From Chara braunii (Eukaryota > Plantae > Charophyceae): DNA of 57,403 nt. The notes under the pieces were generated by a model, which worked only from the letters and a program-made list of their open reading frames with translations, ran no database searches and was not told the origin of the DNA. Below are positions 5,686-53,360 of this stretch, one piece after another. A program made the translations under genes and the position numbers. The stretch covers positions 414,626-472,028 of the forward strand of contig BFEA01000011.1 in NCBI GenBank assembly GCA_003427395.1. Direction: 5' to 3'. Each line of letters begins with the position of its first letter. The first letter of the stretch is position 1.

Positions 5686-5690
<5 letters not shown>
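5109..5690 (-). repeat. PLE pseudo-LTR, 5' copy
   Basis: Direct repeat of 1-580, including the last ~40 codons of the RT ORF. Confidence 0.95.
5196..5239 (-). ncRNA. Minimal type I hammerhead ribozyme
   Basis: Minus strand reads cctc-CTGATGA-gtccgc-acgtag-gcggac-a-GAAAC-gcATC-gagg. Confidence 0.82.

Positions 5691-5757
<67 letters not shown>
5691..5757. repeat. (GA)n microsatellite, probable PLE target
   Basis: Pure GA run directly at the element junction. Confidence 0.95.
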
Positions 5758-9351: not shown

Positions 9352-9992
9352 GTCTACGACGAATGATGGTGGATGGGCATACCGTGGCTGGCGACGAGAA
9401 GGACACAAAGCGAGATAGGGATTTAGGTAGTATTCGATTCGAAACCGAGTAGGATGGGGGGAGAAAAAAGAAAGCGGCGCCTGTTCTGTTGAGGAGGAGA
9501 GCGGTCCAGGAAGACAAGCGATCTGGAGCTCATTGTCGAGCGCGTTCATTTTCTACGAGGAGTTTGTTGTTGAACGGCTGTGGAGACAGGTTAATGTGAG
9601 GAAAGGCGCGAGACGAAGCGGGAGTACGGTTCTTTTCAGAATTCCTCGCTCCTGAACCTTCTTCGCTTCACAATACCCCGGCCGTGCAGCAACGAGGAAT
9701 GGGGGCGCGGGGGACCTTGTCAGCACACGATATGATGGCAATCAGCGGCTGCGTGGTTTGCCACGTCGTGATATTTTAGGTGGATGCGGGAGGGAGGTGA
9801 GTAGGATTCACGGACGGTAAGAAGAATATGTCGTAAGTGAAGAATGAGCGGGGAGAGAGTGGAGGAAGACAGACTGAAAAAGGGCAGAAAAGCGAGGAGG
9901 TGGCGCTTGACTTTCGCTGACGCAAGAGAAGGGCATCAGAGGACGTTAGACGCGAATAGGTACGCACTCTGCGTGCGTGTGTGCGTGCGTGC

Positions 9993-10058
<66 letters not shown>

Positions 10059-10059
10059 T

Positions 10060-19125: not shown

Positions 19126-20005
19126 TGCAATCAGACTTGTCCTCAACCTCGCTTCAGCGTGCATGCAAACAGATGACGATCAAACTTGGCGGGAAGTGCC
19201 CATACAAAGCTCAGAGATAAAACGTGGCCAGGAACACAGCTCAGATTCAAACTTGTCTTTGATGGCTATGGTGCATGGCGCCAGACAAAGGTTCCCACGC
19301 GATCAACTGTATCCACCAGCAACTTATTCGCACATGCATATGCACACTTGGATCACCCTGGATGTCCCGTATACACACACACTTCCTACCCTATCCTACG
19401 TGGCAGCTATGGCTGCCATCTCTCTCCTAAGCTAGCTCGCGGCCATGGTCATGTCTTCTTCCTCTGAGCCCTCTTCTTCTTCCGGCACCTGCAGACTTCT
19501 GTAGCACAAGACGCTCCGACAGCGCTTCCGCATGGCTCACCGGCAGAATGAATGAATGACTTGACGTTGGTACTTGCTAATCGTCCGTGGTCTGCCCTTG
19601 GACGCTGGGCCCAGGGTGCACACAGTCCCACATGGTACTTGCTAATTTTAAAGTGCGACTGGGACTGGGTACCACTGACTAGGCTAGGTAGGACTGGGAC
19701 TGCCGTTTGCTGACTGTGCTAGGACTGCTCCTTGCTGACTCAGCGGCTGACTGACCCCTAGGACCTACGAAGAGTCAGTCCTACAGCTTCTAGAAGGTCG
19801 TAGTATTGACCCTTTGCAACTGTAGCAGCTATGACCTATAACGTACCTATGACCGCTAAGTCTAAGGTCTACGGGCCAAACCCTTGCGACCGTGCTATAT
19901 ACAACAGCCGAAATACGACTCTCAGAGAACAGGTCGCGGGCTCAAACACACGGGTCAACGGGTACTTGGTTAAGGGGGAGGTCTAGGGATCGAGCCCTGG
20001 GTTCT
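19126..20005 (-). repeat. 3' LTR of element D
   Basis: Homologous to 27509-28356. Confidence 0.9.
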
Positions 20006-27508: not shown

Positions 27509-28356
27509 TGCAATCAGACTTGTCTTCAACCCTGCTTCAACGTGCATGTAAATAGAATGACGATCAGAGTTGGCGCGAAGCGCACACAAAGGCTCAGAGA
27601 TAAAATGTGGCCAGGAACACAGCCCAGATTCAAACTTGTCTTTGATGGCTATGGTGCATGGTGCCAGACAAATATTCCCACCCGATCAATTGTATCCACC
27701 GGCAACTTATTCGCACATGCATACGCACACTTGGATCACCCTGGATGTCCCGCATACACAAGCACTCTACACACACACACTTCCTACCGTATTCTACGTG
27801 GCAGCTATGGCTGTCGTCTCTCTCCTGAGCTAGCTCGCAGCTATGGCCGAGTTTCTGTCCTCTTAGCCCTCTTCTTCTTCGGGCACCTGCAGACCTCCGT
27901 AGCACAAGACGCTCTGACAGCGCTTCCGCACGGCTCACAGGCAAAATGAATGAATGACTTGACACTGCCTCTTTATTTATACTTCGGAGCGTTGTTGGTC
28001 TGCCCTCCACAGTCGCGCATGGTATTTGTTGACTGGACAAAGTGTGACCGGGATTGAGTACCGCTGAGTAGGCTAGGTAGGACTGGGACTGCCCTTTGCT
28101 GACTGTGCTAGCCGCTGACTGACTATGACCTACGAAGAGTCAGTCCTGCAGCTTCTAGGAGGTTCTAGTATTGACCCTTCAGAACTGTAGCGGCTACGAC
28201 CTATGACCACTCTATGGGTCAAACCCTTGCAACCGTGCTATATACAACAGCCGAACATACGACTTTAAGAGAACAGGTCGCGGGTACAAACACACGGGTC
28301 AACAGGTACTGTACATGGGTAAGGTTGAGGTCTAGGGATCGAGCCCTGAGTTCTTC
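27509..28356 (-). repeat. 5' LTR of element D
   Basis: Homologous to 19126-20005 and adjacent to the PBS. Confidence 0.9.
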
Positions 28357-29379
28357 GTCTGTCACCGTTTCGGGTGAAAACCGTGTCACTTCAGAGAATA
28401 GAAGGACAGTCAAGTTCAAACCACACAGGTGAATGGGTGAGCGTGCTGCTGCTTTGTCCATGTTTGGGTGGACATTGGCCTTGGTCTGTGCACGTTTGTT
28501 TTGGCATCCTTTGAGAGAGGTGGGCTCTGTCTGTGCACGTTTTATGGAAAGGTCTGTAATTTATTATTTCATATGGTATATGAGCATCTCCAAAGGGTGA
28601 TTGATTTTGCCTATGGTGGAATTTCGCTTCAGTGGTGGTCTCTTTGCCCCCTCCTTCACCAGTCTCGATTACTGCACCATAGTGTACCTCCACAAATTGC
28701 CGAATCTCAATGTTAAACCACCAGTACTTCCTAAAGTCGTGCCCGTTAACGGTTATGCAATTTTGGGAAACGTACGGGTCACTACAGGAGCGCTCAAATT
28801 CATCCAACTTGAAACGTTTCTACCGTACTTGCAACCGCACGAGCCGCACCCGCACAGACCGGATCCGTGCGGAGATCCGTATGGGGGTTGCTCGATCTCC
28901 ACACATTCCGCACCCGCACAGACCGGATCTGTGTGGAGATCCGTACGGGGGGTGGCCGTGTGGAATTTATTTTATTTTATTTTTATTTTTTTATTTTTTT
29001 TGAAAGGGGGGTCTGAGGGGTCCGAGAGGTGTTACGTGTGCTGATATGATGGAGAACAACAAATAGTGAAATTTGAACTGAGTTTCAAGCTTCAACTTTG
29101 AAGTTTGGAGTTTGAACTCCGACTGCCAACTACGACATTGCAAGAATATCAAATTTCATGCAGCGGGTGGGGTTGTTCGGTCGGTACACACCTGTTCATG
29201 TTTGTAGATGCAGAAACACTGCATCTGAGTGCCACATCATGAAAACAGACAACTGCAGAGGGACACAGTGTCAGAAAGTCAAAGTTGTCGGACACATCAC
29301 AAAGAAACCACAAACAGCCTGGGACAAGACAACATCCGAAAGAGCTTCCCCATTGCAATGTTGCTAAGTCATTTATATC

Positions 29380-31680
29380 ACTTATAGTCAGCAAAACAGT
29401 GAACCTCCGAGTTCGCAGTGGGCCAGATACTAATTCTCAGCCTCTCCATCATCAGAAGATTCAGAACCTCCGCCCTGTCCCTCCGCAGCCCCTTCCTCCC
29501 CACTCTCTTCCTCTTGTTCGCCCCCCTCGTCCTCATCATCAGAAGATTCAGAACCTCTGTCCTGTTACCCGTCATCACCATCATCATCACCATCACCATC
29601 ATCATCACCATCACGATCATCATCACCATCGGCACCATCATCACCGTCATCATCATCAGAGGATGACGACGATGAAGCCGAACACGGAGGGGTGTTGTCA
29701 TCGTCAATGACTTTCCCCTTCTTTTTCTTCGCTGCTGCTGCTTTTTTCTTTGCAGCAGAACTCTTTTTCTTTGCAGATGCGGACGCCTTCTTCGCAGCGT
29801 TCTCTGCTGCTTTTCTTTCTGCCTTCTCCTTGTTGCTCGGTCGTCCTCTCCCCCGTTTCGGAGCAGGCGCAATGTCTACCTCCGCGGTACGCTTCCCTCC
29901 ACCGTCCCCCTCGCCAGGACGTGCTCGCCGACGCTGCCTCCTGCTTCCACCTTCTTCCTTGCCATCCACCCATGCCCCCGTCTCCCTGGCCCGCAGCGCA
30001 CGGTCCCGCTCCAGTAGTGGACTTCCGGTGCTGGCCGCTCTTGGCCTGACAGCCTCCTCAAGAGACGTTCTCGGTGCCTCCCCGACATTGTGTTGAAGTG
30101 CCAATGGTGTGTGTAATTGTCGAGCTGCCTGATGCCGTCCTGCTGGTCCATGTAGTCGTCCATGTCGTCATTGTGCAGCCACCTCCGTGCCATCGGGACT
30201 TCGTCATCATCATCCTCCCCCGCTCCCCCCCCATCTCCTTCCTCCAAGTCACTCCCCCCATCCTTCGCACGCCTCTTGACACGCCGCACCCACTCATTGT
30301 AACACGCCTCCGCCTCGTGCTTCCTCTCCTCATCAGGCATGTCCTCCAACCAAGGGATGTGAACATCAACCTCGCCCTGACCGTGTTCTTGCCTCCACTG
30401 CAGCTGGAGGTTCCAGTTGTTATAAACCAACTTCGACAGGCGGGTTGGCAAAATCCGCGTCCTCCTCCCGAAAATGAGCTCATGTAAGCTCCAGTTGCGT
30501 TCGCATGCAGCAAATGAGCTTGCCTGGCCGAGCAGTCTGATGGCTTGAGGCTGCAAAAGGTACAGTCGCGACCCAAATGCATCCCACCACATCGCAGGCG
30601 TCTTTATCCTTGCCGTGCGCATCGATTCCTCTGACTGGAAAGACCCCTTGAAGGGCACCCACTCGTCCACCTGCCAGCTGATATCATCGAATTGCTCAGG
30701 CTTGCACCACGTGTACAACCAGATGTTGAATCCAGCCCGGATCTCGGTGTCCTTGAAGTAGCCGTAAGCTCTATACTCTGGGTCCAAGAAGGCAGCTGCA
30801 CAATGCAGCTCTGATGTCATGAATGCCCAGCGATCCATAAGGATCACCTCCACCTCCCCCTTCTCATGGCTGTTAGCACGTCCAATTTACAGATGGACTC
30901 CACAACGGTGTCCATCCGATGGTAGACCTTAGGTAGCGTTCCACCGGGACCATCTACGAGCCTCAGAAGCTCCACGATTGAATCTGTTGTCAGCAACGCC
31001 TTGTCGACATCATCCCAAAATGTACCGTCCAACACTGTTGCTGTCGCCTCCTCGAACTGCGTGGCAAGGTCGGGCCGCACAAAGCCGGACACCCACCCCT
31101 TATCGCCCACTGCCAGCTTGAGGGCATTGCTCGCATCCGACAACGACTTCAGCATGATGATGTTTGTGGCAAATCGAGTCACACCCGGCCTCTTGATCTG
31201 TGCACCGCCGGATTTGCTGAGGAATAAAGCCCGCACCTTGTCGTGGTTCATGATAAACTTCCCCAATTGATTCCCCCTCTTCACCGTCGTTCTGAACCAC
31301 TCTAATGACTTGTTCATGTCCTCCAAGGCAAGGTCGAGGGCATGTGCTATACAACCAACCCGGAAGATCCACGGATACTTTTGTTGCACCGTCTTCCCAG
31401 CCTTCACACAAACTCTGGTGTTGTCCATGACCACACCCACCACGCTCTTTGGCCCATTCTCCTCAATCGCCCCCTCGACTATATGGAAGTACGCCTGCGC
31501 ATCCTTGTCCTTCCCTTCGACACACAGCGATTTCCAGAACACTGTGCCTATGGGGGAGGACACCATAACGTTGATGTGTGGTCTTCCCCGCCGGTCAGAC
31601 CACCCATCAACTTGTATCATGCACCCCGTGCGTGCCAAAGTTCGATAGATTGGATTGTTTTCGAAATTTCAATACCTAGG
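29380..31680 (-). pseudogene. hAT transposase (DUF659 plus hAT C-terminal dimerisation domain), frameshifted, N-terminus missing
   Basis: DGWSD, VMDN, CIAHALDL, TRFAT, LHCAAAFLDP, WWDAFG, ASSFAACERNWS. Frameshifts near 30850 and 30000. AT-hook KRGRGRP in the tail. Confidence 0.9.
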
Positions 31681-31781
31681 TGGGATAGTAGGAGGAGGAG
31701 GTGGACGGCAAGGTCGTGCTATAATCTTTTGTGTATCGATCCCAATCACCCCTCCGTTTCGTGAGCTTTTCTTTTTTTTCA

Positions 31782-31850
31782 ACCTTTTCTCGATTTGTGC
31801 ATGTCATCCTTGCGCAGAGGTCGTGCTAATCTTCTCTGTGTCGTCCTCAA
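31782..31850 (-). ncRNA. U6 snRNA-derived fragment (inverted copy, pseudogene-like)
   Basis: Minus strand gacgacACAGAGAagattAGCacgacctctgcgcaaggatgacatgcacaaatcgagaaaagg closely resembles the 3' two-thirds of plant U6. Confidence 0.85.
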
Positions 31851-31855
31851 TCTTT

Positions 31856-32960
31856 GGGAACGATACAGAGAAGATTAGCACGACCTCTGTGCAAGGATGA
31901 TACGCACAAATCGAGAAAAGGTATAAAAAAAAAGAAAACTCGACAAATTCGACACCTGTGGGAGAAGAGGAGGAGGAGGAGGAGGAGGACGATGACGAGA
32001 ACGGAGGACGAGGAGGAGAGATGGAGGACGAGGAAGGGGAGGAGTAGGACGAGCGGGAGGAGAGGAGGAGGAGGAGGAGGAGGAGGAGGAGGAGGGGAGG
32101 AGGACGACCTGGAGGAGGAGACGAAACGGAGGGATGGGAACGATACAGAGAAGATTAGCACGACCTCTACGCAAGGATGATACACACAAATCGAGAAAAG
32201 GTAAAAAAAAAAAAAAACTCGACATATTCGACACCTGTGGGAGAAGAGGAGGAGGAGGAGGAGGAGGAGGAGGACGACGACGACGAGAACAGAGGACGAG
32301 GAGGAGAGATGGAGGACGAGGAGGAGAGATGAAGGATGAGGAAGGGGAGGAGTAGGACGAGCGGGAGGAGAGGAGGAGGAGGAGGAGGAGGAGGGGAGGA
32401 GGACGACCTGGAGGAGGAGACGAAACGGAGGGATGGGAACGATACAGAGAGGATTAGCACGACCTCTGCGCAAGGATGATATGCACAAATTGAGAAAAGG
32501 TCAAAAAAAAAAGAACTCGACATATTCAACACCTGTGGGAGAAGCGGAGGAGGAGGAGGAGGAGGAGGAGGAGGAGGACGACGACGAGAACGGAGGACGA
32601 GGAGGAGAGATGGAGGATGAGGAAGGGGAGGAGTAGGACAAGCGGGAGGAGAGGAGGAGGAGGAGGAGGAGGAGGAGGGGGGGAGGAGGACGACCTGGAG
32701 GAGGAGATGGAACGGAGGAATGGGAACGATACAGAGAAGATTAGCACGACCTCTGCGCAAGGATGATACGCACAAATCGAGAGAAGGTCAAAAAAAAAAG
32801 AACCTCGACAAATTCGACACCTGTGGGAGAAGAGGAGGAGGAGGAGGAGCAGGAGGAGGAGGAGGACGACGAGAACGGAGGACGAGGAGGAGAGATGGAG
32901 GACGAGGAAGGGGAGGAGTAGGAAGAGCGGGAGGAGAGGAGGAGGAGGAGGAGGAGGCAG
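31856..32960 (+). repeat. Tandem array of four ~280-300-bp units, each a U6 3' fragment + A-tract + conserved linker + (GGA)n
   Basis: U6-like cores start at 31856, 32136, 32435 and 32722 (gggaacgatACAGAGAagattAGCacgacctctgcgcaaggatgatacgcacaaatcgagaaaaggt). Confidence 0.92.
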
Positions 32961-33438
32961 AGAGGATGATGAAGGGGAGGTCGAGGCCGGTGATATTCAC
33001 CGAGCGATGGCGGCAGCTCCTCCCTCACACGGCAGCACGGCAGCACGGCAGCAGGTGGCGGCACTTGAGAACGGTGGCAGCTCCTCCTTGAAATGGCAAC
33101 GGCACTCCTCGCAGGAATGGTCGTGACCGACCACACACCTACCCAAGAGGCCCAGCCAACTCCACACAGAGTAGAAAGAACTGGAAACAGGTTTCAAAAA
33201 TTCGAAACCTGGCGGTCCGGCCTTGAGCGCGGTCCGAAAATTTTTTTTTGGCCTTCGTAACAATTTTGGCGGGGGGCCTCCGATGTGCCGTTTCGACCCC
33301 TGCCTTTTTTTTTTTTTCAGGAGGGGGGGGGGGAAGGGTCGGGCCGTTCCCCGCACACCTCGTACACCGCGCGGGAATGGTCAGGCCCGGGCGCCGGACG
33401 TCGGGAAACTCATGCACGATGTGCGCTTGCAAGTATGG

Positions 33439-33523
33439 NNNNNNNNNNNNNNNNNNNNNNNNNNNNNNNNNNNNNNNNNNNNNNNNNNNNNNNNNNNNNN
33501 NNNNNNNNNNNNNNNNNNNNNNN
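33439..33523. other. Assembly gap
   Basis: N run. Confidence 1.
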
Positions 33524-33579
33524 TTTTTTTTTTTTTTTTTTTTTTTTTTTCCTCCCCTCGGCCTGGACATTTTTTGTGT

Positions 33580-33710
33580 CTGGTGTACCGATCCGGACGG
33601 TCTGGGTCCGGTCCTGTCCGGTTGTCCGGTGCCTGTCCGGATTAGCGGACGTCTGAACCAGTCCAGACAAATGTCCAGACATGTCCGGGTCCGGGTCCGT
33701 GGTTGCCATG
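33580..33710. mobile_element. Probable terminus of another TIR DNA transposon (hAT-like) with gtccgg subterminal repeats
   Basis: Many tccgg/ccgga motifs, ending ...ccgtggttgccatg. Confidence 0.5.
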
Positions 33711-33759
33711 GAGCAAACTATGTGAGCAGATGTATGCACAATGGGTATGTTGGTGATTG

Positions 33760-36266
33760 ACAGTTGAGCTTCAATTGGAATCCCCCTCCCCTGTATCCAA
33801 TGTGCCTGTCTGCATCATCGAGCAGTGGTGTCTAAGGTGTGCATTAACGGCACACCCCTGTGCCCGAGGAATATGCTTATGACCAGAACTGCCCTATCTT
33901 TATCCTTGCGTGCAACGAGCCTTACGTCTGACTGATCTGTCTGATCAAGAGGCAGTTTAAGGACAGCCCCCAAGGTCCTCAGGAATTATTTAACGTCGCA
34001 GACAGGACGACGATCACAGCCAGTGGACAGTTCAGAACCCCGCCAGGAATATTTATAGATGTTCTGGTAAGTGCCTGCATAGGACTGGTCAGTCCGCACA
34101 CCCCTTCTATCAGCGCAGCAAAGCGCCTCAAAGGACAAAGCAGCATGGCCTGCATGTACTTCTCCCATGGGTTGGCATGGTGACCGTGACCCGTGCTTCG
34201 ACCAGGGCCCTTCAGAGGCACTGCCCCTCTCCTGCCAGATGCGCCACTGGGAAGAATGTTGTCGCTCGAGGTAGAGCGCTCACGACTCACAAAAAGAGGA
34301 CACTCAAGGTTGGACTCACTTCCTCACGGTAAGAAGAAATTGAGAGTAAGGGAACAACGTACCTGGAGATGGTTGCCCCCAACCACAGATTTCTCACCAA
34401 TTGAGCCAATGTGCATTTCGATGACCGGTCGTAGCTTCGGTACCATCCACAACGCAGTGCAGTGCCACCTCAGCCAAAAGGCCATGTCAGCATGCTCTTA
34501 TCATCATGCATACATCCACTGTTGCCACAGCTCGGACGCTGTCGCCACAGCCTTCCTGCGACCCACCCCTCTACCCGGGTGTCGCGTTGCTAAACCAGCG
34601 CCAATGTATCCTTACTGTACATAAGTGAATGTATTCACACTGCAAAATTTCTCAGACCCTGCTCCAGGGTCCCCAATTATTGCGTCCCCAAACCCTACCG
34701 GTGTAGGTGTAGGTGTTGCAGGTCAGTGAGTACAGCACCTGTAGGAGCATGCCAGTCCCCAAAGTCCAAAATTTGCAGCAGCTAGCAACGGAAGTTGGGA
34801 ACTTTCCCAAAATAGCAACTTGGGAAGGCAGAGGCCAAAGGAGGCCAGTACCGATTGAAGCAGGCACACCCAGCCCACTTCAACTATATATTGTGGGCTA
34901 CAGTGCCGGAGGATAGTCAGTTGTCATTTCGCAAATTTGTGGAAGCTGTTGGAGCTTGTGCGGACTAACGACCTGGACGAAGAAGTGCGCTGAAGGGAGG
35001 AAGAAGACCAGCGCCCTGGCTGCGACAAACCACCATAGCCAGGAGAGGGGGAGATGAAGTGATTGGCGGCCATAGCCGCCCGTTGTTGTGAGGCACACCG
35101 CAGAGGCATTCAGGGTAGATCCAGGACATTGTAGAGGGAGGAACAGTAGCAGGGAGCATCGCGGGATGAACAGTGCAGAGATGTGAGTGGAGAGAGAGAG
35201 TAAGAGAGGGAGAGAAGAACCAGATCGGAGGGGGAGAAAGTTGGGTACTTACTGGAGTGTGTTGCAGCGGTTGAGACTGCCCAATCCCGAACTTTTGTAA
35301 TTGTATATTATTTGTACTTTGAGTGGAATTTCGAATTGGTACTGTTCATGGCCATAGCCCAAGCTTGTGAGTTCTTTATCTGAATGCTCCCAATTTGCAT
35401 GTGGTATTTTGAGTTGGATCTCACGGGGATCATTGCAGAAGCATCGTCAGCGCACCAAGTAAGAATGTCGCCGGCGGCAGATAGGCGATCTCGAACCACT
35501 CTGATACCAAATTGAAAGGTATATGAGCGAGAGCGATATACAGAAAACCAAATTGGAAAATCACGCAGATGTCCAGATAGCCATGTACAAGCAGAGAGTT
35601 CCATCCAAATGAGAGCAATACGATGAACTCGTGAGCCAATGTTCAAGCCCTCAGGCCACGCCAGCGCAGTATTCAAAGTTGCTCCTCTGTCACTTCCATA
35701 TCTATCCTATCTACGTTCTCGCGACAGGCTCACTTCGACTCTGAAGACCAATCTACATGTCGTCAACACAAATGCCGACCTCCCACATAAACCAGGTACG
35801 TACGTCTGCCTCTCCTCATCACCCCGTGACACCCACTCTTTGTGCCTCCTCCAGCCCACCCTGCCTCCCGCCCTTCACCTACCCTGCGCCCTGCAGCCCG
35901 GCTATGGCCGCTAGCGTCCCGTTGCCCTGCAGCGCCCTCACCTCGCAGCGCTCGTGAGCGCCCTGGCCTAAGCTCGGGCATGCAGCCACCCGTGTGCTAG
36001 TGCAGCAGCGTGTCCGCAATGCACGCATTGGCCAGAATGCCAATCCCTGGCTGCCCTCCTTCCTATATGGAAGTGGCAGCCTCTGCTGATTTGCGTGGGC
36101 CTGGACGTTGGGGCTTCCAGTAACTTCCGGTTGGGCCCCAGTGCCTGCGCCCAGGCTAACGTTACGGTTGTGGGCCTGGGCCCTTTTCAGCTGGGCGCAC
36201 TCAGAACATTCCAGGCTTCGGATGTTTGCTGCACTCGCATAGGACCAGGGGGAAGATACGGCGACA
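33760..36266 (-). mobile_element. Truncated Ty3/Gypsy copy (element C): 5' LTR ~35513-36266, PBS 35496-35509, and 5' leader
   Basis: PBS TGGTATCAGAGTGG. Leader 33830-34560 is homologous to 50855-51600. The LTR shares atggaagtgg(c)cagcc with the element A LTRs. Confidence 0.75.
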
Positions 36267-36881: not shown

Positions 36882-36958
36882 AGTAGCGTGAGGCCAGCCG
36901 TGGAGTTGGAGACTTACCTGTTGTTGGCCGGTGCGTTGCTCATCCTATCGATGGAAAA

Positions 36959-36992
<34 letters not shown>

Positions 36993-37448
36993 GACACACA
37001 CACAGACACACACACACACAAAGTGTGGCAGTGTATATTTCCATGTTGTAGCGGAATATTGATTCAACTTTGCTCATCCTATCGATGGAAGTAGCGTGAG
37101 GCCAGCAGTGGGGTTNNNNNNNNNNNNNNNNNNNNNNNNNNNNNNNNNNNNNNNNNNNNNNNNNNNNNNNNNNNNNNNNNNNNNNNNNNNNNNNNNNNNN
37201 NNNNNNNNNNNNNNNNNNNNNNNNNNNNNNNNNNNNNNNNNNNNNNNNNNNNNTTTGGAGTGTATAGAGAATATGACAACACACACACGTGCACACACAC
37301 ACAAACAACTGTGGCAGTGTATATTTCCATGTTCTAGCGGTAGATTCATTCGATTTTGCTCATCCTATCGATGGAAGTAGCGTGAGGCCAGCCTTGGGGT
37401 TAGAGAATTACCTGTTGGCCGGTGTGCTGCTCATCCTATCGATGGAAA

Positions 37449-37479
<31 letters not shown>

Positions 37480-37494
37480 GTCTCTCTCTCTCTC

Positions 37495-37547
<53 letters not shown>

Positions 37548-37664
37548 AAAAAAAAAAGATTCATTCGATTTTGCTCATCCTATTGATGGATGTAGCGTGA
37601 GGCCAGCTGTGGGGTTGGAGACTTATCTGCTGGCCGGTGCATTGCTCATCCTATCGATGGAAAA

Positions 37665-37714
<50 letters not shown>

Positions 37715-37760
37715 TGCACACACACACACACAAACACACACACAAACACACACACACACA
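36882..37760. repeat. Satellite with ~210-bp units containing (CT)n(CA)n
   Basis: gtagcgtgaggccagc recurs at ~36882, 37091, 37377 and 37592, and gctcatcctatcgatgga is repeated. A gap lies at 37116-37253. Confidence 0.88.
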
Positions 37761-37761: not shown

Positions 37762-38258
37762 TGGGGCATACTGCGCATCCACACGGGCCTGCAGGGCCTG
37801 ACCAGACGGAAAATAAGGGCCGTCCAGGCCCTGTGTCGTTTCAGCCTAAAGGCCTGAAAAGGAGGGCCATTTTCAGGCCCTCATAAAGTCGACCTGCCCT
37901 GAAACTCAGGCGCCAGACCAGGGTTTAGCACAGGGCATTCTTGGGCATGTTTCAAGACAACCTTTGTTTGAACTTCAACGCGTCTGGCACAATTCGGCAT
38001 GGGAAGGCAGTTCACGGGGAGTGCATAGGCAGCACTTCACGGGCCGTTCAGGAGGCAGTCTTCAGGATTCGGCCGCAGCACTCTGGAGGAGCGCTGCAGC
38101 ACTAGGTGTAGTCTTCAGCGCTGGGCGCTGTAGGAGCTTAGAGTAGCGGTGAGGGAGAGTTGGCGGAAGCCAGGGGGACTTACCTGTGGCGCCATAGCTC
38201 CCGCTTCGTCTTCGATGTACCTGCAATAAGGCGCCACCTTCACAAGTTCGTACTTGGT

Positions 38259-38320
<62 letters not shown>

Positions 38321-38359
38321 CTTCACCCTTTCATTACCTGACTTCTCAGCACCTACGGA

Positions 38360-38419
<60 letters not shown>

Positions 38420-41380
38420 ACATTGGGCAAGGGATTATTGGGACCTGTACAGAAGACTTGGTGTTGACGACATTCCCATCTTCCCCCTCTTCTTCGTCTG
38501 ATCCCCCTCTTCGTTTGTGTATGGTTGGGGAGTGGCGCATTCTTCCTGTGTGAGCGCCAGGCCCCTTCACACCATCTGATGATGATAATGTATGTTCGGT
38601 CTGCAGTGCGACATTGATTGGTCTGATCATTGGTATTTTAGCCTTTCGCTGCGCTATCCTGTACTATGTGAGAGAGGTCGGTTCTTGTTCTGGTCTGTAA
38701 AGTACGGTATGCAACAGTTTGGTATCGGAGTGGACCTCTCAATCAGAGGATCCGCGCAATCAAGGAGCCAGCTTGCTGGATTGATTGATTGTTGAATGAT
38801 TGATTGATTGATTGATTGTTTATTAGTGAATCAAGTAGGGCTTCGTCAAATCTCTGCAAAAAAAAAAACTTGGAGATTAGCATTTCGTTTTTTTTTTATT
38901 TGACCATGGGCATATTAGGGAACTAGGGAGGTCGTCATATTCTCAGGCTGGTTCTATTCTTCTGTGAAAGTGGAACCTCCATTCTATTTCGCACAATTTT
39001 TTTTTTCAAGATCGCATTTCTTTTTGAAAGCCGAAACTTTGTGAAAATTTGCGTCGATCTCATTCATAGCACTCCTCTGTAATGCCTCACTGATAGCAGA
39101 TCGATAGATATTCAAAAAAAAAAAGAAAAAAAAAAAAGGGGGGGTTGATCCGCTTCTTTATTTTTTTCTTTTATTTTATTCTGTTGATTAGGATCGGAAT
39201 GGAAAGTGCAGTTTTGTTACCTTCCTGCGTTTCCCTCCCACCCAGCCCCTTCTTTGCATTCCCGGTTTGGTAAGTGCCATGTCAGCAGCAATGCCACATC
39301 AGCAGTGCCATGTCAGCAGTGCCATGACAGCAGTGCCATGTCAGTAGCAGTGCTGCATCAGCAGTGCCATGTCAGCAACAGTGCCATGTCAGCAGTGCCA
39401 TGTCAGCAGTGCCTTGCCACCATGAGGGTTTCAGTTTTGGGCATGCCAGGCCAACTGGCCAACGAGTCCATTGCCGAGTACCGATAGTGGTTCCAAGCTC
39501 AGCTCGCACTGATCGAGGCTGAGGAACAGTGCCAGGCGGCAGCCGAGGCTGCCCGCCTGCAGGCTTAAGCGGAGGCAGCAGTTGAAAAGCAGCGGCTTCA
39601 GGCCGCAGCTGACGCAGTTGCCCAGGTCCGCCGCAAGGAGAGGCCTAGGATCAACTGCAGCGGCACGAAGCCGCCAGTGTCGACAGGCTCAAGTTATGGC
39701 ATTTTGAACCATCCGAGGACCATGACAACACGACACCGGAAGAGCAGCAGGAGTTTCTCTCCAAACTCGTGACCCGGTTGCAGTCCCAGCTGGTGACTCC
39801 GACGGGCAGTGCGGAACCAGAAGGATCTGCACGAGGATGCTATGCGGGTACACCATTCTTGTGTACAGGACTTGGAGCAAGCAGCACCAGGACCAAATGT
39901 TGCCGAACCCAGCAGTGCAGCTTCAACCTGCCAATTGGAGCAACGAGTTTATCATGTAGTTGCAATGCTCGGCGACATAAGCACCTTCGCCGCACCAGCC
40001 ACCATGAGCGAGCAACTCGACACCTTGAAGACCGAGGTTCGGCAACCTTACCAGCCGCTCGACAACGATGGCAGCACCAGTGCATTGCGGGCATACAAAA
40101 TGTCGACGTTCCAGATCGAGAAGTTTGATGACTATACGCATCAGGACCCAGTCGTCTGGTGGCAAGGCTTTACAACGGAGATTGGGATTCATGAGGTCCC
40201 GAATCACTTGTACATCTCGGTGGTGTTTCTCAACGCCAAGGGCGATGCCAGATCTGGCTTAGCCACATGGCAATCACTTGTACATCTCGGCGGTGTTCCT
40301 CAACGCCAAGGGCGATGCCAGATCTGGCTCAGCCACATGGCAACCATCCACGACGTCCAGGTCTCCGACCTGCATAAGAAGATCTCTTGGGACGATATGA
40401 AGCGATTCATTGTGGACGACGCCCCGACGCTCGCCATCAACCGCCTCTTCGCCATGACTCAAGGCAAACACCGACCCGCGATTGGCTCATCGAATGGCAG
40501 AAGATCGTGGCAACACCCGATCTTGAGCTGCCATTTTTGCATTTGCTCCGGGAGTTCTACAACCGGTCGTGTGCCGCCTTGTGCCTCGCACTCGGTGATC
40601 GAGAACAATACACGACCTTCGTCGACGTGAGATAAGGCTCCTGAGATCATCAAGACCAACCGGGCTGCTGCACACGAGAAGTCAGCGTGGCAGCCAGCCC
40701 ATGTGGAGAAAGGAATATTTGGTCCTCGTTCGCAGCAAGTCGCTGCAGTCCAACCGGACAACATTGTGGAAGACCCGACAGCCACACCAGCATCACATGA
40801 GGATGATCAGGTGGCCGCTGTCCAGCCACGAAGCTAATAACTCCCATGGAAAAGGGAAGGCAAAAACTACATTGTCGATCGGAAATGGACAGCCAGTACC
40901 ATGGGTCAAGTTCAACTTGACCGAGGCCGAATACAAGTACCGCAGCCGATACGGTTGCTGTTATTGATGCAACAGCACCAAGCACAAGACCTCCCAATAC
41001 CAAGATCAAGGCAAGGGGGATGTTCGACCTCGAATCAGCTCGGGAAACAGAGTTGCGTGGGAGGTAAGGCGACTCCACTTCTCAATCCGCTAAATTTGGT
41101 CGCCTTGCTAGCGGCCTCCTACACATCTGGGGAGCATGTGAATGTCGCGAGTCCTCGGTTCACTTACGTGGATTACCCTATCCACTTGGTCTCACCGTTG
41201 GACCAGCCACTCCACATGCAACAATCCACCACATGCACGGTTTCACCACCATCGGCAACCGATTCGGCCGCTTCACCGCCAACTTTCACCGCGGATTCGA
41301 CGTCATGGTCAAGATTTGAGAGACTCGACCCGTTGGCGTTCGTGGACTTCCAATGGATGCCCCTTCCCCCGACCGGATAA
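37762..41380 (+). mobile_element. Ty3/Gypsy element B, 5' part: LTR 37762-38716, PBS 38720-38730, degenerate gag
   Basis: The LTR ends ...gtatgcaaCA and is followed by TGGTATCGGAG. Gag motifs IEKFDDYTHQDPVVWW and RYGCCY. Confidence 0.85.
39274..39415. repeat. ~14-bp minisatellite (cagcagtgccatgt) in the element B leader
   Basis: Read directly. Confidence 0.85.
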
Positions 41381-44300
41381 ATATTTGTGAGCCTTCCAGG
41401 CTCTCCCAGCAACGTGGTCGAAGTAGGGTACACTGTACGCTTGCACCTGCGCGGTTGGGCACGCCTAACCAATTCGATCCCAGGCCACTTTTTGAACGGG
41501 TTTAGGCGTAGACAATTTGGCCTAATGGGAAGCTACTGAAAACTCAGTCCAGCCAGCCAAACATAGGAAAGTGCTCACCAGCCTTCGGAGGCATTCGACA
41601 CTTGCGTAAGCGAGCGGCAGCGCTGCTGGAGCGCGAGTGCATGGGCTGCCTGCTTAGCGCTAGGGGCAAGTGTGCGTGCGTATGTGGGTGTGCAAGGAGG
41701 GCGCTGCTGAGGGAAGCCCCATAGCCAGCCCTACATAGCCAGGCCTTGGCTTGGATGTGTAGCTGGAGGGGTGGTATGGTCTTCGTGTATAGGAAGAAAA
41801 CCTGGGTGAAGAAGGTGAGGGAGAGAGAGAGATGAGGATGATGATGTGAGAACACATACCTGGTTTTGGCGGTGGTCTACAGGGTGGACGTCTTCATGTA
41901 CTTAGGCTTTTGCTGCTGACGTGAACAGGTTGCATGTCAATTCGTAGGCTGGGTAGTAGTCTGATTCTAGTCTGTGCGCTGATTGGTGGTGGCGAGAGTA
42001 TGCTCTCACTGACATTCGGATTCGGTGCTTTGGTTCTCCACTGGTGGAATATCAGTGCATATCTGTTTTTTGGACAGCGTTTGACTTTTTGGCTTTCAAT
42101 GTGATTTTGCATTTTGGAATTCTGTTATTTCGTTATTGCTCATTTTCCTTGCATAAGGACCATACTTGCGGCGCATCCCGTGCGTGCTGCTCGCGCACAT
42201 GCGGCACACTGCGCAATGCGCATGTGGCGTGTGCACCCGGTGCGCCACATGGGCAAATTTTGGGGTCAGCCAAAAAAGGAAAAAGTTGGGGAGGGGTTGA
42301 ATCGAAGTTCCCACACCCAGCCAAAATTAGGACATTGCCCGCGCAAATTTTGTTCAGGGCCGCCCGACCACAAAACCTGTGTGTGTTGGCACGTTTGCTG
42401 TTCACAACTCCATGCTATCTTTAGTGTATCTGAGCCCTTTCAGAGGTCCAATATGGTCATGATGAGGACTCGTCTATGGAACCCTATGAGGACTCGTCTA
42501 TGGAACCCTTGCTTTCAGCTCACTACTTCCGGGTATAGAAAACTGCAAGGACGATGAGCAATAGGGAACTTCAGCAATCAAACAACATCATACACATGAG
42601 ACGAGATAGTCGTGACCTCGAACCAAAAGCAGAATTGCATCACGAGTTTCACCAAATAAGAGCACACCAAAAGCTGATAATTGATAATGTTGGAATACTC
42701 TCATCATCATCAATCGAAGAACCAACCTATCTGGCGCTCGACGCCCAAACTACGAATGGCAGATCCTATCTCGCCCAGACTACAATGCCGATGATGACTT
42801 CAACAACTTCCCAAGTACGAGCAGACCTCGGCCAATGTCGCATGCGTCAAGCACCAGGTGTGTCTCTCGTATCACTCAACCTCGTTCCCCAACTCACAGG
42901 TGCCACTTGCACCCAAGGACCACCATGCGCCCCATCCAGCGTACAGCAGCGCAACTTGGCAATGGCTGCCTGCTCCTTCCAGCTCGCCCGTGAGCGAGTG
43001 AGCCTCGCAGGCGATAGCGCAGCGGCGCTTGCGCACAAAGCAGCCAGTGCCTGAATGTCCAATGCGTAGGCTGGCCCTTTCCTAAATGGAAGTGGCCAGC
43101 CTACTTGCGTGCAGGCTGGCTGCGCTTGGTCCCTGTCCAGAAGCTTTCGGTAGGCCCAGGGAGGCTGAGCCTCAGACCAAACGAATCAGGCCTAGGGCCA
43201 TCGACAATTACCCGTGCCCAACTGCCCGTTGTCTGAGTTGGGCCTACGCTGCGTATGTCGCCTGGGGCCTGACTTAGATAAAGTCGGTAAGGAGGCCAGG
43301 GCATGGGCGCCTTCAACCAACTGGCGGTGCGCAACTGCCTGAATTTTCCCCAGTTGCGAAGTATTCAAAAATAGGCCTCTTGTCGTGTGTCGGACCTGCC
43401 TTCACTTAGGCTGGCCGACCTGTTGCAAATAGGGGCTTTGTAGGGCTTATCGAGGCCTATGCCTCGCATTCCCTCCTCCATACTTCGCTAGTCCTCTGAG
43501 AAGTTCAATCTTCGATAATTTGACGCTTTCCTTTTTGCAGAGACTTCTCATAGTGCGCGACAACGTGTGGAGCGGCATCAGTTCCTCCCTTGTGAATCCT
43601 CCCTTGGATCAGTGATGGTTGAACCAAACTCGGTACTGCAGCTTCGGTTTTGGAGGATGCCCCCGGCCTGTTGGTCTTGGAATTGACATCTCCCTGTGAT
43701 CAACGATGTTGTCGATGTCGACCTCTCCATGCACGGTTGGGGGCAGCATTGAGCGGCGAGAGGGAAACTGATCAGTTTCTCCGAACGGTGCAAGTTTTGA
43801 GGCGTGAAATATTGGATATGTGCGTAGGTGACCAGGGATGCGAACAACATAAGGAGGACCATCTGGTTCATCCCCAACGACATCTAGAACCTCCCATGGT
43901 CCAAAGTACTATGGCATGAGCTTACAGGATATCCCGTGCTCCTGTCCCAGTTTGGCATCTCTCATCATCGTGGGGCACCAGAACCGTTGCAGCAGATTGG
44001 TTGCAGTCTTCTTGAAGCTAAAATGTCTGGTGGCATCATGACATTTGCCTGAAAATAAACTACGCAAAGACTCCCTATTGGGAACACACAAACGTTTATT
44101 CCCGGCCTTCCCAAGGAACAACAGACCGTTGACCAACTCAAACTCGGGAGAAGTGATTTTGTCCTTCACCTTGAACCTGCGAATGATCTCAGACATGAAG
44201 TGATCCACGCGGTAGGCTTCCACCATAGAGTGAGTAACATCGTCCGCAAGCCCAAACTCAATGATCAGCACTGAAGGAATCTGGTCTACGCGACAGCGCG

Positions 44301-44395: not shown

Positions 44396-46205
44396 AGGCT
44401 GGGTTTTCATCCACTTGGTGTATAGCCAGAGTTTGGACGAGCATGTGGAGCACTTGCACACCGTTTTGGAACGGCTACGACAAGCCAAGTACAAAGCCAA
44501 CCGCGACAAATGCGAATTCGCTCGGCAAGAGCTCGAGTACTTGGGCCAGTTTGTGGTCCAACCGCTCGCGGTCAAGATCGAGACCATCCGAGTGTGGCCC
44601 GAGCCCACCAACACCATGAAAGTTCGCTCATTCATGGGGTTGGCGGGCTACTACCAACGCTTCATCACCGGGTACTCGAGGATCGCCGCACCATTGACGA
44701 GACTACAATCGCCAAAGGTGCCATTCGTATTGAGCGACGAAGCGCGCCAGTCATTCCAGGCACTTAAGACGGCCATGCTCATGGTTACCCGCCCTTAGCA
44801 TCTACGACCCCACCTTGCCAGTGAGTGACGACTGACGCTTCTGGCTATGGCATTGGGGAAGTCTTGGAACAACACGACGGCGACGACTGGCACCCCGTGG
44901 ACTATTTCAGCCACAAGGTGCCTCCCATCACTTCAGTTGATGATGCAAGGAAGAAGCGTTCGTGATGGCTCTCAAGTGATGGCGACACTTCCTCCTTGGG
45001 CGTCATAGGTTCACATGGGTCACTGATAACAACACGTTGACCTACTACAAGATGCAAGATACATTGAGCAGCACAATGGATGTATTTCATCGACCAATTT
45101 GTGGCCGCTTGCTTTCCCGCCTCCGCCTCGAAGTATAGGGAATTGCTGGCTCAAGACCGTGCGAACATGCAAAAGGCTAAAGTCCGCATGCAGCAGCAAG
45201 CCAACAGGCATCTCGTGCCATGTCCCACTTGCGCCGGCGATCTGGTTTGGGTCTCCGCGGATGAGTTTGCACTCCAACATGATGTTTCACGCAAGCTACT
45301 CCCCAAGTGGTTTGGACCATGGACCGTCCTTTCAGCTACAGTCGACGAGCCCGACGGCCCATCCTTTGTGATCGACATCCCTTCGCATCTGCTGGTCCAT
45401 CCAATCTTTCACGCCTCGAAGCTGGCAACATACACACCAGCTAAGAGCAACGACTTCCCGGGCTGACGATCGCAAGACCTTTCGTTTATGGATGCTCATC
45501 AAGAAGTCGACCTCGTCATCACGGATGGCCAATACGGCAACAAGCCTCGATAGTACAAAGTTACCTTCAAAGCATGCGATCCTGACGACACTCGATGGAT
45601 TTCAAGAGCAGATTTGGAAGCATCCGCACCACTGATCTACGCTCATTACAAACGACAAAGACTAGCTAAGGAAGCTTCACGACCTGCCCCTCCCGCCCCG
45701 GACTTTGGTCCCTCCCTTCGATAAGCAGATTCGCCCTCGCAGGTAAGCTCGGTCTTTCAAGGAGGGGGGGGGTGGCATACTGCACATTCACAGGGGCCTG
45801 CAAGGCCCGACCATACGGAAAATAAGGGCCCTCCAGGCCCTGTGTTGTTTCAGCCTAAAAGCTTGAAATGGAGGGCCATTTTCAGGCCCTCAAAAGTTGA
45901 CCTGCCCTAAACTTAGGCGCGCAGGCCATTTTTGGGCTTGTTTCAAGACAACCTTAGCTTGAACTTACGCGCGTCTGGCACGATTCGGCATGGGCAAGAG
46001 CAGCCTCGCAGACCGAACCAGTACTATATAGTGCTGGTCCACCCTACAGGCTGCAGGCAGTTCACGGGGAGTTCACAGACACTTCACGGGCTGCTTAGGA
46101 GGCAGTCTTCCGGATTCGGCCGCAGCACTCTAGAGGAGCACTGCAGTAGTAGTAGCTAGCGCGAGGTGTAGTCTTCAGCACTGGGCGTTGTAGGAGCTTG
46201 AGTAG

Positions 46206-46248
<43 letters not shown>

Positions 46249-46428
46249 GGCGGAAGCTAGGGAGACTTCCTGTGGCGCCATATTCCTGCCTCGTCTTCGA
46301 TGTACCTACAACAAGGTGCCACCTTCACAGGTTAGTACCTGGTACAAGAGAGAGAGAGTTATTTTTCCTCCAAGTCCACCATCTCTCCCTCACCCTCTCG
46401 CTACCAGACTCCTCAGCACCTACGGACT

Positions 46429-46482
<54 letters not shown>

Positions 46483-46834
46483 CGACCTTGAGATTTGATG
46501 ACATTTGGATTTAGACTCGACATTGAGTTTGAGACATTGGACGAGGGATTTTTTGGGACCTGTACCAAAGACTTGGTGTTGACGACATTCCCATCTTCCC
46601 CCTCTTCTTCGTCTGATACCCCTCCTCTTCGTTTGTGTATGGTTGGGGACTGACGCATTCTTCCTGTGTGAGTGCCAAGCCCTTTCACACCATATGATGA
46701 TGATGATGTATGTTTGGTCTGCAGTGCGACATTGATTGGTCTGATCATTGGTATTTTAGCCTTCCGCCGCGCTATCATGTACTATGTGAGAGAGGTCGGT
46801 TCTTGTTCTGGTCTGTACCGCTCAGTATGCAACA
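44396..46834 (+). mobile_element. Element B-family 3' part: RT/RNase H/integrase-end fragments, chromodomain, PPT, and LTR 45771-46834
   Basis: KCEFARQELEYLG, SFMGLAGYYQRF, TDASGYG, KLLPKWFGPW, chromo-like YKVTFKACDPDDTRWI; PPT aaggaggggggggg. The LTR is homologous to 37762-38716. Confidence 0.87.
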
Positions 46835-46847: not shown

Positions 46848-46926
46848 GCGCTCACCTTCGCACAATAGGCCAACGAACTCCAACGGTGCGCTGGAGTTTG
46901 TTGGCCTACTGTGTGAAGGTGAGCGC
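46848..46926. other. 35-bp inverted repeat hairpin with a 9-nt loop
   Basis: gcgctcaccttcgcacaataggccaacgaactcca pairs with tggagtttgttggcctactgtgtgaaggtgagcgc, with 3 differences. Confidence 0.9.
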
Positions 46927-49900: not shown

Positions 49901-52610
49901 AGGGAGAGGCTGCACTGATGCTCGAGCGGTATATGGGGATACCCCAGGCACCGGTGGGACAAAAGGAGGAGGATGTAGAACGGGCCAGACACCAGGCCCG
50001 GACAGTGATGGTGCCGCCTGCGCTCGGCCGACCAACACGGCCAGACTCTGCTGGATGTCTTGTAAGTTCGTCGTCTGTTGATCTTGCATCTCTACTACTC
50101 GTAGCAAGACCGACCTCAGGGTCATCACTTCATCATCCAACCTCTGGGTCGGGAGTCGACACTAATGGCTGGCTTGTCACGACAACAGTGGACTGACTCA
50201 CAGTCTGTGCGACCGTTGACCCTACAGAACCTGAACCACTAGCCTGAGAACTTTGCTGCGCAGCAGTGGCCATGGTTGATGAAGTAGCGGCTTCGCTTGC
50301 TGCTTGCCTCTGCTTCCCTAGCTCTTCTCTGCTGCTGCAGCCTCTCTCTCTGCTGGCGGAACAAGTATCTGTCGCCCTCTGGTCCTAATGCCAAATGGGC
50401 AGTCGGGCGTCTTGCCGATCGCAAGAGCCTATCGTCCGCCTGTGGGACCTTCCCGTTGCTCATAGGCTACAAAACTGCACACCGTCTGCACTAGGACACA
50501 ATCGATGCCTACCGCAGTGACATGTACAGACCGATTTATAATAAAATGATCGGTGGCTGTTTCATAGAATGTACATTTGGGTCCAACAGGTAAGTTCAGA
50601 TTCCTACAAACGAAAACTATTTTACTTTGACCAGTCCACAAACCGAAGCACAAGGAACAGAAAACAGTTCTAATTGATGCTGTCTGTCAGATGTTAATGG
50701 CTGTATATCTAACTAATCAAATAGAATCGTTTGTTGGGTCTGTTTGCAGAATGGGATCTTGCTCGAACTTATCACCTAGAATCTACCCCTCCCTCGATTA
50801 TTCTTGAATGTCTCTTGTCGTCAACGTCCCTGAGCGATCCAGATAGCGTGCGTTTCTAAGGGTGTGCAAACGGCCCACCCCTGTGCCCCAAGTCCTGCTG
50901 AGCTGGCCAGCCATGCACAGTATTTATCCTCGTGTGCAGTGAGCCTTACACCGACCGATTGGCTGATCAGGAGGCACGTTTTTATTGACGGCCCCCAAAG
51001 TCCTCAGGAATTTTTTATCGTCGCAAATAGGACGACGATCACAGCCAATGGAAGGTATCCCGCCAGTGCTTATATTTATAGACGCCCGGTCTCGTCTGTC
51101 CCCTAGGGCTGGCCTGCCCTTCAGAACCCCTCTACAGCGCAGCGAGCAGAAAGGATAAAGCAGCAAAGCATGCGTGCTCTACTCCCGGTGGGTTGGCATG
51201 GTGACCGTGACCCAGTGCTTTGTCCAGGGCCCTTCAGATAGCACCGCCCTCTCCTTCCAGATGCTCCACGTGAAGATTGACAACTCTCAAGGTTGAGCGC
51301 GCACGACTCCTCACATGAGAGGACTCTCAAGACAGAACGCATCCTCTCAAGTGTCGAAGAGGGTAGATAAGGTTAGGTGCAACGTACCTCAAAATAGCTG
51401 CCCCAAACCACAAATATTCTCACCAGATGACCCAATGTTGATTGTGATGACCAGTCACTGCTTCGGCACAACCAGCATTGCGCAACCGTTGACCTCAGCA
51501 TCAATCACAAACCGGTTAGTTCTCATCACACTACGAACACCCAATCATCACCGCTTAGCCTTCCTGGCGAACCCCTCTCCACCTGGGTCGCCTACTTATC
51601 TTCGCCCTCCTCACTACACACGTCCCACGGCACGGTCGCTCACCACACACACCGCGTGCATGTACCGCATTAGCGCACCGAACCACAGCTCCGATACCAA
51701 ATTGCAAGGAAGATGAGCAAATGCGAACTTCAGCAATCAAACAGCATCATACACATGAGACCAGATAGCCGTGACCTCGAACCAAAAGCAGATTGCATCA
51801 CGAGTTTCACGATATAAGAGCACATGAAAAGATCATAATTGATAATGCTGGAATAGTCTCATCATCATCAATCGAAGAACCATGTTGACATCCTATCTGG
51901 CGCTCGGCGCCCAGACTACGAATGGCAGATCCTATCTAGCCTAGACCACAATGTTGCTGATGACTTCAACAGCTTCCCAAGTACGAGCAGACCTCGGCCA
52001 ATGCCGCACGGGTCAAGCACCAGGTATGTCTCTCATATCACTAACAACCTCGTTCCCGAACTCACAGATGCCACTTGCGCCCAAGGACCACCATGCGCCC
52101 CATCCAGCGTACAGCAGCGCAGCTCGGCTATGGCTGCCTGCTCCTTCCAGCTCGCTCGTGAGCGCGTGAGCCTGGCAGGCGATAGCGCAGCAGCGCTTGC
52201 GCACAAAGCAGCCAGTGCCCGAATGTCCAATCCGTAGGCTGGGCCTTTCCTAAATGGAAGTGGCCAGCCTGCTTTCGTGCAGCCTGGCTGCGCTGGGTCC
52301 CTGTCGAGAAGCTTCCGGTAGGCCCAGGGAGGCTGAGCCTCAGACCAAACGAATCAGGCCTAGGGCCCCCGACAGTTACCCGTGCCCAACTGCCCGTTGT
52401 CTGAGTTGGGCCTACGCCGCGTATCTCGCCCAGGGCCTGTCTTAGATGCAGTCGGTAAAGGAGGCCAGGGCCTGGGCGCCTTTAATGAACTGGCGCTGCG
52501 CAACTGCCTGAATTTTCCCCAGTTGCGAAGTAGTCAAAAATATGCCAAATATGCCTCTTGTCGTCTGTCGGACCTGCCTTCACTTAGGGCGGCCGACCTG
52601 TTGCAAATAG

Positions 52611-52795
52611 GGGCCCAGTAGGGCTTACCGAGGCCTATGCCTCGCAAAATGACAGAACTGACCGTTGTGTTTCATTGGTGCTTTCGCTAGAAAAAAATGA
52701 CAGAACTGACCAGTAGGGGCCCAGTAGGGCTTACCGAGGCGTATGCCTCGCAAAACGACAGAACTGACCGTTGTGTTTCGTTGGTGCTTTCGCTA
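52611..52795. repeat. Tandem duplication (~105 bp) of the element A LTR end plus flank
   Basis: gggcccagtagggcttaccgaggc..cctcgca-aaa.gacagaactgaccgttgtgtttc occurs twice. Confidence 0.9.
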
Positions 52796-53360
52796 AAAAA
52801 AAAAAGGAAAAAAACAGGCAGTAGCTATACACATGCACAAAAGACAAAAAATATGAGAGTAGTCGAGTGAGGCCCTATTACAACTTACCTGTTGCCAGAA
52901 TCTGTAGGGCCTCTCTCAACTACACACGTCCGTTGTAGTGCCTCTGTCACATGAGGGCTGCAAGTCCAGCTGTAGTCCGTTTGTAAGGGCCTCGCTCCAG
53001 TACTCGTGCACAAAAGACAAAAAATATGCCGGTGTATCTTTCCTCGCTCCACCATTCTCCAAATGTGCAAAGTGAGAATGAATCTTCCGCTAGAACATGG
53101 AAAGATACACCGCCATATTTTGGTCTTTTGTGCATGTGGAGAGCAGTGGAGCGAGGCCCTGTCAGTAAACAGGCTGTAACTGTTTCCCAAATAAGACAAA
53201 AACAAATAAGAAGAAAAAGAGGAAAAGCAACGGGCCTATCGGGCTGAAGAAAATGCCCTCTGTCGAGAATCCGTAGTGTCCGTTGATACAGGCGTTTGTT
53301 CGGTCCGATAGTGTCAGGAGAATGGTGTCGTTGCACAGCCAACAAACGCCTGTATCAACG

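Follow-up and report, generated by a model that had tools for sequence, protein, structure and literature searches.

Plant DNA transposons capture or carry gene fragments, as in Pack-MULE-type transduplication. Polyadenylated snRNA retrocopies generated via the LINE reverse transcriptase have been described as U6/poly(A) processed pseudogenes (Doucet et al. 2015, PMC4476161). The SINEs grouped as SINEU possess heads derived from the U1 or U2 snRNA (Kojima 2015, PMC4494074), and the Dada-U6 elements split U6 at 65-GCGCAA-70, with a TSD at that place (Kojima & Jurka 2013, PMC3706591).

The locus analysed here belongs to Chara braunii and was studied within its window, that is, the whole stretch of 57,403 nucleotides submitted to the analysis. 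Its copies resemble the U6/poly(A) pseudogenes in that they are devoid of promoter and U-tail, carry an A-rich tract, are truncated and are non-functional. We consider it probable, from the structure of the copies and of their surroundings, that the locus is a U6/poly(A) retro-pseudogene which has been amplified in tandem and in inverted orientation and which decays neutrally 5' of a dead hAT copy, probably riding in it. In the literature searched, neither Chara nor hAT elements are reported to contain U6 arrays.

Organisation of the U6-derived array

The preliminary description of this DNA reported four regularly spaced U6-derived units and proposed a comparison with the Rfam U6 family. The covariance model RF00026 recovers the four units and, in addition, an inverted copy, so that five U6 copies reach the gathering threshold of 44 bits with scores ranging from 54.4 to 61.9 bits. 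The direct units follow one another head to tail, as a tandem repeat with a spacing of 280, 299 and 287 bp. The array and the pieces located on its left, of which the first three below were absent from the preliminary description, are the following:

31659-31705, plus strand: diverged, older linker and start of a GGA spacer (local alignment score of 22.5 to the linker of unit 4)
31706-31760, minus strand: partial inverted copy made of the 5' flank ACGAAACGGAGGG and of U6 to about GCACGACC (blastn over 31711-31744, 85%, and reading of the sequence)
31763-31850, minus strand: inverted copy of U6 and A-tract (inverted repeat; RF00026 match at 31772-31879, minus strand, 57.2 bits)
31854-32133, plus strand: unit 1, with U6 segment and A-tract at 31855-31937, then linker and GGA-rich spacer (repeat finder and multiple alignment; RF00026 match at 31825-31932, plus strand, 60.9 bits)
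32134-32432, plus strand: unit 2, with U6 and A-tract at 32135-32217 and a spacer containing a 20-bp internal duplication (repeats and alignment; RF00026 match at 32132-32212, plus strand, 54.4 bits)
32433-32719, plus strand: unit 3, with U6 and A-tract at 32434-32516 (repeats and alignment; RF00026 match at 32404-32511, plus strand, 56.0 bits)
32720-32960, plus strand: unit 4, with U6 and A-tract at 32721-32803, ending within the GGA-rich spacer, where the array stops on its right side (homology lost in the alignment after about 32960; RF00026 match at 32717-32798, plus strand, 61.9 bits)

The 83-nt segments formed by U6 and its A-tract display 92-94% identity to the reference copy of the repeat finder. 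In the multiple alignment, the U6 segment is followed by an A-tract of 10-16 nt, then by the linker, by a spacer rich in GGA/GAC (about 150-170 bp) and by the junction GACGAAACGGAGGGAT, and the A-tract, conserved linker and GGA-rich spacer announced for each unit are all found again. The linker of all direct units is CTCGACAAATTCGACACCTGTGGGAGAA, with the aligned form CTCGACA(A/T)ATTCGACACCTGTGGGAGAAG. According to the covariance alignments, the true U6 homology is limited to the model positions from about 25-27 to about 97-100 and starts at AAU-GGAACGAUACAGAGA; the columns of the 5' stem-loop (model positions 1-18) are skipped or occupied by a flank that does not pair, and a run of A stands in every copy where the model has UUUUU. 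The 5' stem-loop and the oligo-T terminator of U6 are thus both missing, as had been proposed. The A-tract comes directly after ...GAGAAAAGGU(C) in all five copies, as expected of U6/poly(A) pseudogenes. The ACAGAGA box and the AGC triad are read as GAUACAGAGAAGAUUAGC in units 1, 2 and 4, with one change each in unit 3 and in the inverted copy. Outside the array, Rfam and blastn searches of the whole window detected no further U6-like sequence.

The left border of the array is more complex. The inverted copy and unit 1 form together a palindrome whose arms of 88 nt are 88% complementary and separated by 3 nt. On the minus strand, the flank ACGAAACGGAGGG and the partial U6 5' piece are found directly after the A-tract of the inverted copy, with neither linker nor spacer in between. 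The rearranged pieces at 31659-31850 therefore imply at least two inversion junctions at the locus (31655-31853).

On the right side, the linker appears once more outside the units:

33198-33211, plus strand: isolated exact linker core AAATTCGAAACCTG, 240 bp beyond the right end of the array

When up to two mismatches are allowed, this core gives 6 matches against 0.69 expected, and all but one of them are at the locus. The isolated core is contained in a small palindrome (CAGGTTTC...GAAACCTG). Taken together, this lone core and the diverged linker at 31659 suggest a linker that belongs to the local element and not to the retrocopy, and the core could be a motif native to the 5' region of the hAT element.

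Two other origins were examined for sequences in and around the units and rejected. The right flank was considered as a decayed fifth unit; its alignment past the 14-mer scores 12.5 against 9.6 +/- 1.3, which is not significant. The acidic-tract coding region of the transposase was considered as the source of the GGA spacer; 69 of 300 block shuffles score at least as high as the real alignment.

The signals expected of a transcribed RNA gene were searched for as well. No plant USE was detected within the locus and no TATA/USE-type Pol III promoter either, each U6 piece being preceded by the GGA-rich spacer; no terminator-like site was found, A-tracts taking the place of T-runs. The unit contains no tRNA-like element of the kind that serves as internal promoter in SINEs, and no Rfam family other than U6. 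Since they possess neither the U6 5' end, nor a promoter, nor a terminator, the units would never have been genes, and the copies look like passengers within or beside a dead hAT copy and not like a working RNA gene.

These results bear on the idea that the unit is a mobile module, a SINE-like retroelement or a U6 satellite present at many loci and composed, in this order, of linker, GGA spacer, the 3' two-thirds of U6 and poly(A). Each unit can indeed be read as ending with U6 and A(n), which is the phase expected for a retrocopy. We nevertheless hold this idea to be rather unlikely, given that the unit has no internal Pol III promoter and no tRNA-, 5S- or 7SL-like head, that the 57-kb window contains no second unit or linker elsewhere, save the 14-mer situated 240 bp away, and that the diverged linker and this 14-mer, both lying in a local flank free of U6, suggest a linker of local origin. 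A word search of a large protein collection with one translated frame of the unit matched no predicted protein, which is a weak test, and the exact patterns of the mutated U6 core and of the linker gave 0 matches in metagenome contigs, where Chara DNA is not expected. The SINE-like unit of the preliminary description finds no support here, neither USE, TATA, tRNA-like head nor terminator having been found, and the amplified retro-pseudogene is preferred.

The adjoining hAT transposase and the limits of the element

On its left, the array lies beside the remains of a transposase gene, around which the limits of a hAT element were sought:

29876-31650, minus strand: fragment of a hAT-type transposase (DUF659, weak hAT dimerisation domain), with a frameshift near 30870 and no N-terminus
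28823-28840, plus strand: candidate terminal inverted repeat (TIR), pairing with 33421-33438 at 16 of 18 positions
33439-33523, no strand: assembly gap (run of N), probable right end of the element, followed by a 27-nt run of T

The ORFs 30844-31638 and 29876-30853 (minus strand) match the Pfam family DUF659 (E 2.2e-32, profile positions 30-149), and Dimer_Tnp_hAT is scored at 19.8 bits, just under its cut-off of 21.4. The homologues P0011 and P0012 possess both the DUF659 and the hAT dimerisation domains, and the domain make-up of the transposase, an RNase-H-like core with a C-terminal dimerisation domain, is that of the hAT superfamily. The best seven protein relatives are all hypothetical DUF659 proteins of Chara braunii (52-61% identity). 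With Chara braunii homologues as queries, tblastn makes the homology begin at 31650 and places the frameshift near 30870. The longer relatives possess 70-115 N-terminal residues that have no match anywhere in the 57-kb window, and neither a BED/zinc-finger-like exon nor an N-terminal exon was found on the minus strand to the right of the array. By reading the sequence, the transposase frame reaches a stop just upstream of 31650, where no acceptor AG is visible. The transposase copy is dead and truncated.

The sequence derived from the array begins 5-9 bp from the start of the transposase homology. The array thereby occupies the place of the 5' part of the transposase, to which its four direct units run in antisense. 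The preliminary description had put the array inside a hAT transposon, between its TIRs and antisense to the transposase: the position at the 5' part and the antisense orientation hold, the pair of TIRs is no more than a candidate, and what was called the transposase is a fragment. As the latter is frameshifted and devoid of N-terminus and of upstream exon in the window, the location inside a transposon is only likely.

The search for the ends of the element gave the following picture. About 0.02 pairs as good as the candidate TIR are expected in the search space, according to a rough estimate, and MAFFT offers for it an alternative, ambiguous register. Its right arm abuts the gap at 33439-33523, which makes the outer end of this candidate and the 8-bp TSD unreadable. 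Neither the k-mer nor the exhaustive 16-mer comparison yielded a TIR pair accompanied by a TSD, and inverted repeats with an 8-bp duplication were obtained at chance level only. Blastn revealed no inverted homology between the flanks, and the hAT ends are not enriched in the Ac-type subterminal motif AAACGG. The unrelated repeats 27509-28354 and 33828-34443, each copied elsewhere in the window, confine the block to at most 28355-33827, about 5.5 kb.

Two repeated stretches are situated near these limits: a 64-bp tandem duplicate with CCGGAT motifs at 28835-28954, and a GTCCGG-rich stretch at 33580-33700, past the gap on its right. Both resemble the subterminal repeat clusters of DNA transposons and are not tied to the TIRs.

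The neighbourhood of the array and the transposase could also be accidental: some unrelated rearrangement or insertion would have brought a tandem U6-pseudogene array, formed in GGA-rich intergenic DNA, next to a truncated hAT fragment. The lack of verified TIRs and TSD, together with the missing N-terminus and the absence of an acceptor, means that the array could sit at a rearrangement breakpoint and not inside an intact element. The abrupt end of the transposase homology at 31650, with its in-frame stop, and the inversion junctions in 31655-31853, at least two in number, go in the same direction. What renders such a coincidence unlikely to us is that the breakpoint falls only those 5-9 bp from array-derived sequence and that the unrelated repeats frame one single block, 28355-33827, which contains both the hAT fragment and the array. 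We therefore retain the array as a probable passenger of the hAT copy.

The remainder of the window contains other elements. A Penelope-like retroelement occupies positions 1-5695, with direct terminal repeats at 1-585 and 5109-5695 (96.8% identical) and two ORFs on the minus strand, GIY-YIG (2149-3357) and zinc-knuckle (3397-4653). An uninterrupted ORF of 760 aa at 9844-12126 (plus strand), with five CCCH zinc fingers (zf-CCCH, E 6e-42), is probably a host gene. Further assembly gaps (runs of N) are present at 37116-37253 and 8094. Three to four repeats of about 215-290 bp, with (CT)n(CA)n microsatellites and GCTCATCCTATCGATGGAA, extend over 36882-37760 and are interrupted by a gap; a minisatellite with a 14-nt period, GCAGTGCCATGTCA, is repeated about 10 times at 39259-39422, and a related motif is found at 34459-34508. 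Small palindromes are located at 46848-46926 and 52986-53160. Four pairs of dispersed repeats with 73-90% identity (42540-43468 and 51699-52646; 37765-38716 and 45774-46834; 19126-20005 and 27509-28354; 33828-34443 and 50852-51469) make the window dense in unclassified repeats.

Order of events and decay of the copies

The substitutions carried by the copies allow their history to be followed. The sequence CACGACCUC is present in five of the five copies where the Rfam consensus has CAUGGCCCC, and since all of them share it, they would descend from one seed copy. The five copies read GCACGACCUCUG against GCAUGGCCCCUG in the Rfam consensus, a difference of three transitions within the ISL 5' strand; the shared U6 substitutions are scored here against the Rfam consensus, from which the U6 of Chara itself may differ. 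These common substitutions agree with the earlier proposal that one captured copy was then amplified. By contrast, GAUGAUACGCA (GAUGAUA) is common to the four direct units only, the inverted copy having the consensus-like GAUGACA. Compared with the direct units over the U6 part, the inverted copy shows 87-90% identity and, as far as these substitutions tell, it is older than they are.

The direct units differ from one another at 9-15 of about 230 shared sites (93-96% pairwise identity). When their shared columns are compared, nearly every variable site proves to be private to a single unit, with only two phylogenetically informative ones, and this divergence of 4-7%, nearly all at private sites, points to a single amplification burst. 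Between units, U6 with its A-tract is 91-94% identical, against 89-98% for the remainder of the unit. The U6 part being no better conserved than the rest, no selection on the U6 sequence is seen.

The scenario which we propose on these grounds, after the model of the U6/poly(A) pseudogenes made by LINE reverse transcriptase, begins with one U6 snRNA, whose U-tail would have been trimmed from the 3' side, which would then have been oligoadenylated and reverse-transcribed back only to about nucleotide 25. The retrocopy would have been inserted in GGA-rich sequence just upstream of the DUF659/hAT transposase gene, and this seed would then have acquired the three transitions of the ISL 5' strand. 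An inverted duplication would have come next, giving rise to the palindrome and to the older fragments at 31659-31850. One further mutation, GAUGAUA, would have appeared after the inversion and before the tandem amplification. A block of about 290 bp, comprising U6, A-tract, linker and GGA spacer and bounded by GGA runs of microsatellite type, would finally have been amplified in one burst to four units, each of which would have decayed independently thereafter; slippage or unequal exchange aided by the GGA microsatellite would be the likely route of this amplification.

The structure of the locus and the order of these events are given by the sequence itself; the mechanisms we only infer. Between the flanks of the seed insertion, which were reshaped by duplications, only a 5-nt resemblance, GAAAC, can be noticed. 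With no recognisable TSD, it is from the A-tail and the truncations alone that we infer retroposition. The retroposed, A-tailed U6 fragment of the preliminary description keeps in this way its 5' truncation, its A-tail and its absence of terminator, the retroposition itself being presumed and the SINE-like character finding no support.

The same measurements are relevant to a function of the array. If it were transcribed from the minus strand together with the transposase, its four U6 segments would be produced in antisense, along with a hairpin of 88 bp, and these RNAs could base-pair with the U6 snRNA or be diced into small RNAs. The palindrome is predicted to fold, as RNA, into a near-perfect 88-bp stem of -133.7 kcal/mol (z = -23.8 versus shuffles), long-hairpin miRNA models score it by structure alone, and the units are still about 90% complementary to the U6 consensus. 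This function seems to us quite improbable all the same: the U6 part is not conserved above the spacer, no promoter-proximal exon can be recognised in the broken transposase next to it, and the matches to the miRNA models are far under the gathering thresholds, with no sequence identity. The role of antisense-U6 RNA or of U4/U2 decoy that had been suggested finds no support in units whose U6 part and spacer decay at the same pace.

As for the palindrome considered as a miRNA hairpin, it was tried and rejected, MIR7533 giving 84.8 bits against a gathering threshold of 230, through pairing only and with no sequence identity.

Could the locus instead be one copy of a Chara hAT lineage which stably carries recurrent U6 arrays, for example as multimeric cDNA made from ligated or circular U6-containing RNA, the hairpin and the antisense units giving small or antisense RNAs that pair with the U6 snRNA? 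A multimeric cDNA made in one step would fit, because the four units diverge in a star-like manner; taken as a whole, the proposal is in our opinion a long shot. Either of two outcomes, the spread of these arrays by a single hAT family or their formation by a special reverse-transcription route, would, if true, bear on the way in which snRNAs enter the mobile fraction of a plant-lineage genome. Taken alone, and according to the neutral amplification that we favour, the locus would be no more than a relic, a dead U6 retro-pseudogene that was multiplied on the spot beside a broken transposase.

Comparison with known snRNA-derived elements and gene-capturing transposons

The Dada-U6 elements share with this locus the presence of U6 fragments beside a DDE-type transposase antisense to U6, and they differ from it by the U6 65-70 insertion site and TSD (GCGCAA/GCGAAA), which is wanting here, and by the family of their transposase. 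Even though Dada-U6 insertions have U6 fragments on their sides and frequently a transposase running in antisense to U6 (PMC3706591), the insertion of a Dada-like target-specific transposon into a genuine U6 gene cluster, leaving U6 halves, is hardly conceivable and we exclude it, because every copy is continuous through the GCGCAA site (CUGCGCAAGGA), the transposase is here of the DUF659/hAT type, and the units, lacking the U6 5' end, the promoter and the terminator, are not genes.

With SINEU, the locus has in common the reuse of an snRNA-derived segment in a repeated element. In SINEU, the snRNA provides its 5' part as head and the tail is derived from a LINE (PMC4494074), whereas here the 3' two-thirds of U6 are found at the tail end of the unit and no promoter or LINE tail was identified in it.

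The Pack-MULE-type elements are comparable by the presence of non-functional, host-derived sequence between the transposase gene and the end of the element. The cargo of the Chara locus would differ from theirs in being the retrocopy of a small RNA and not a gene fragment captured at the DNA level, and the boundaries of the element are here candidates only.

The U6/poly(A) pseudogenes remain the nearest relatives of the copies described here. Those were described from mammals, single and dispersed, with TSDs (PMC4476161); those of the present locus belong to a charophyte, are truncated at the 5' side, have no recognisable TSD and were amplified with their flanks, in tandem and in inverted orientation. 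In this amplified form, the locus would constitute a clear example of such a retrocopy with a datable order of events: the seed, then the inversion, then the burst of four.
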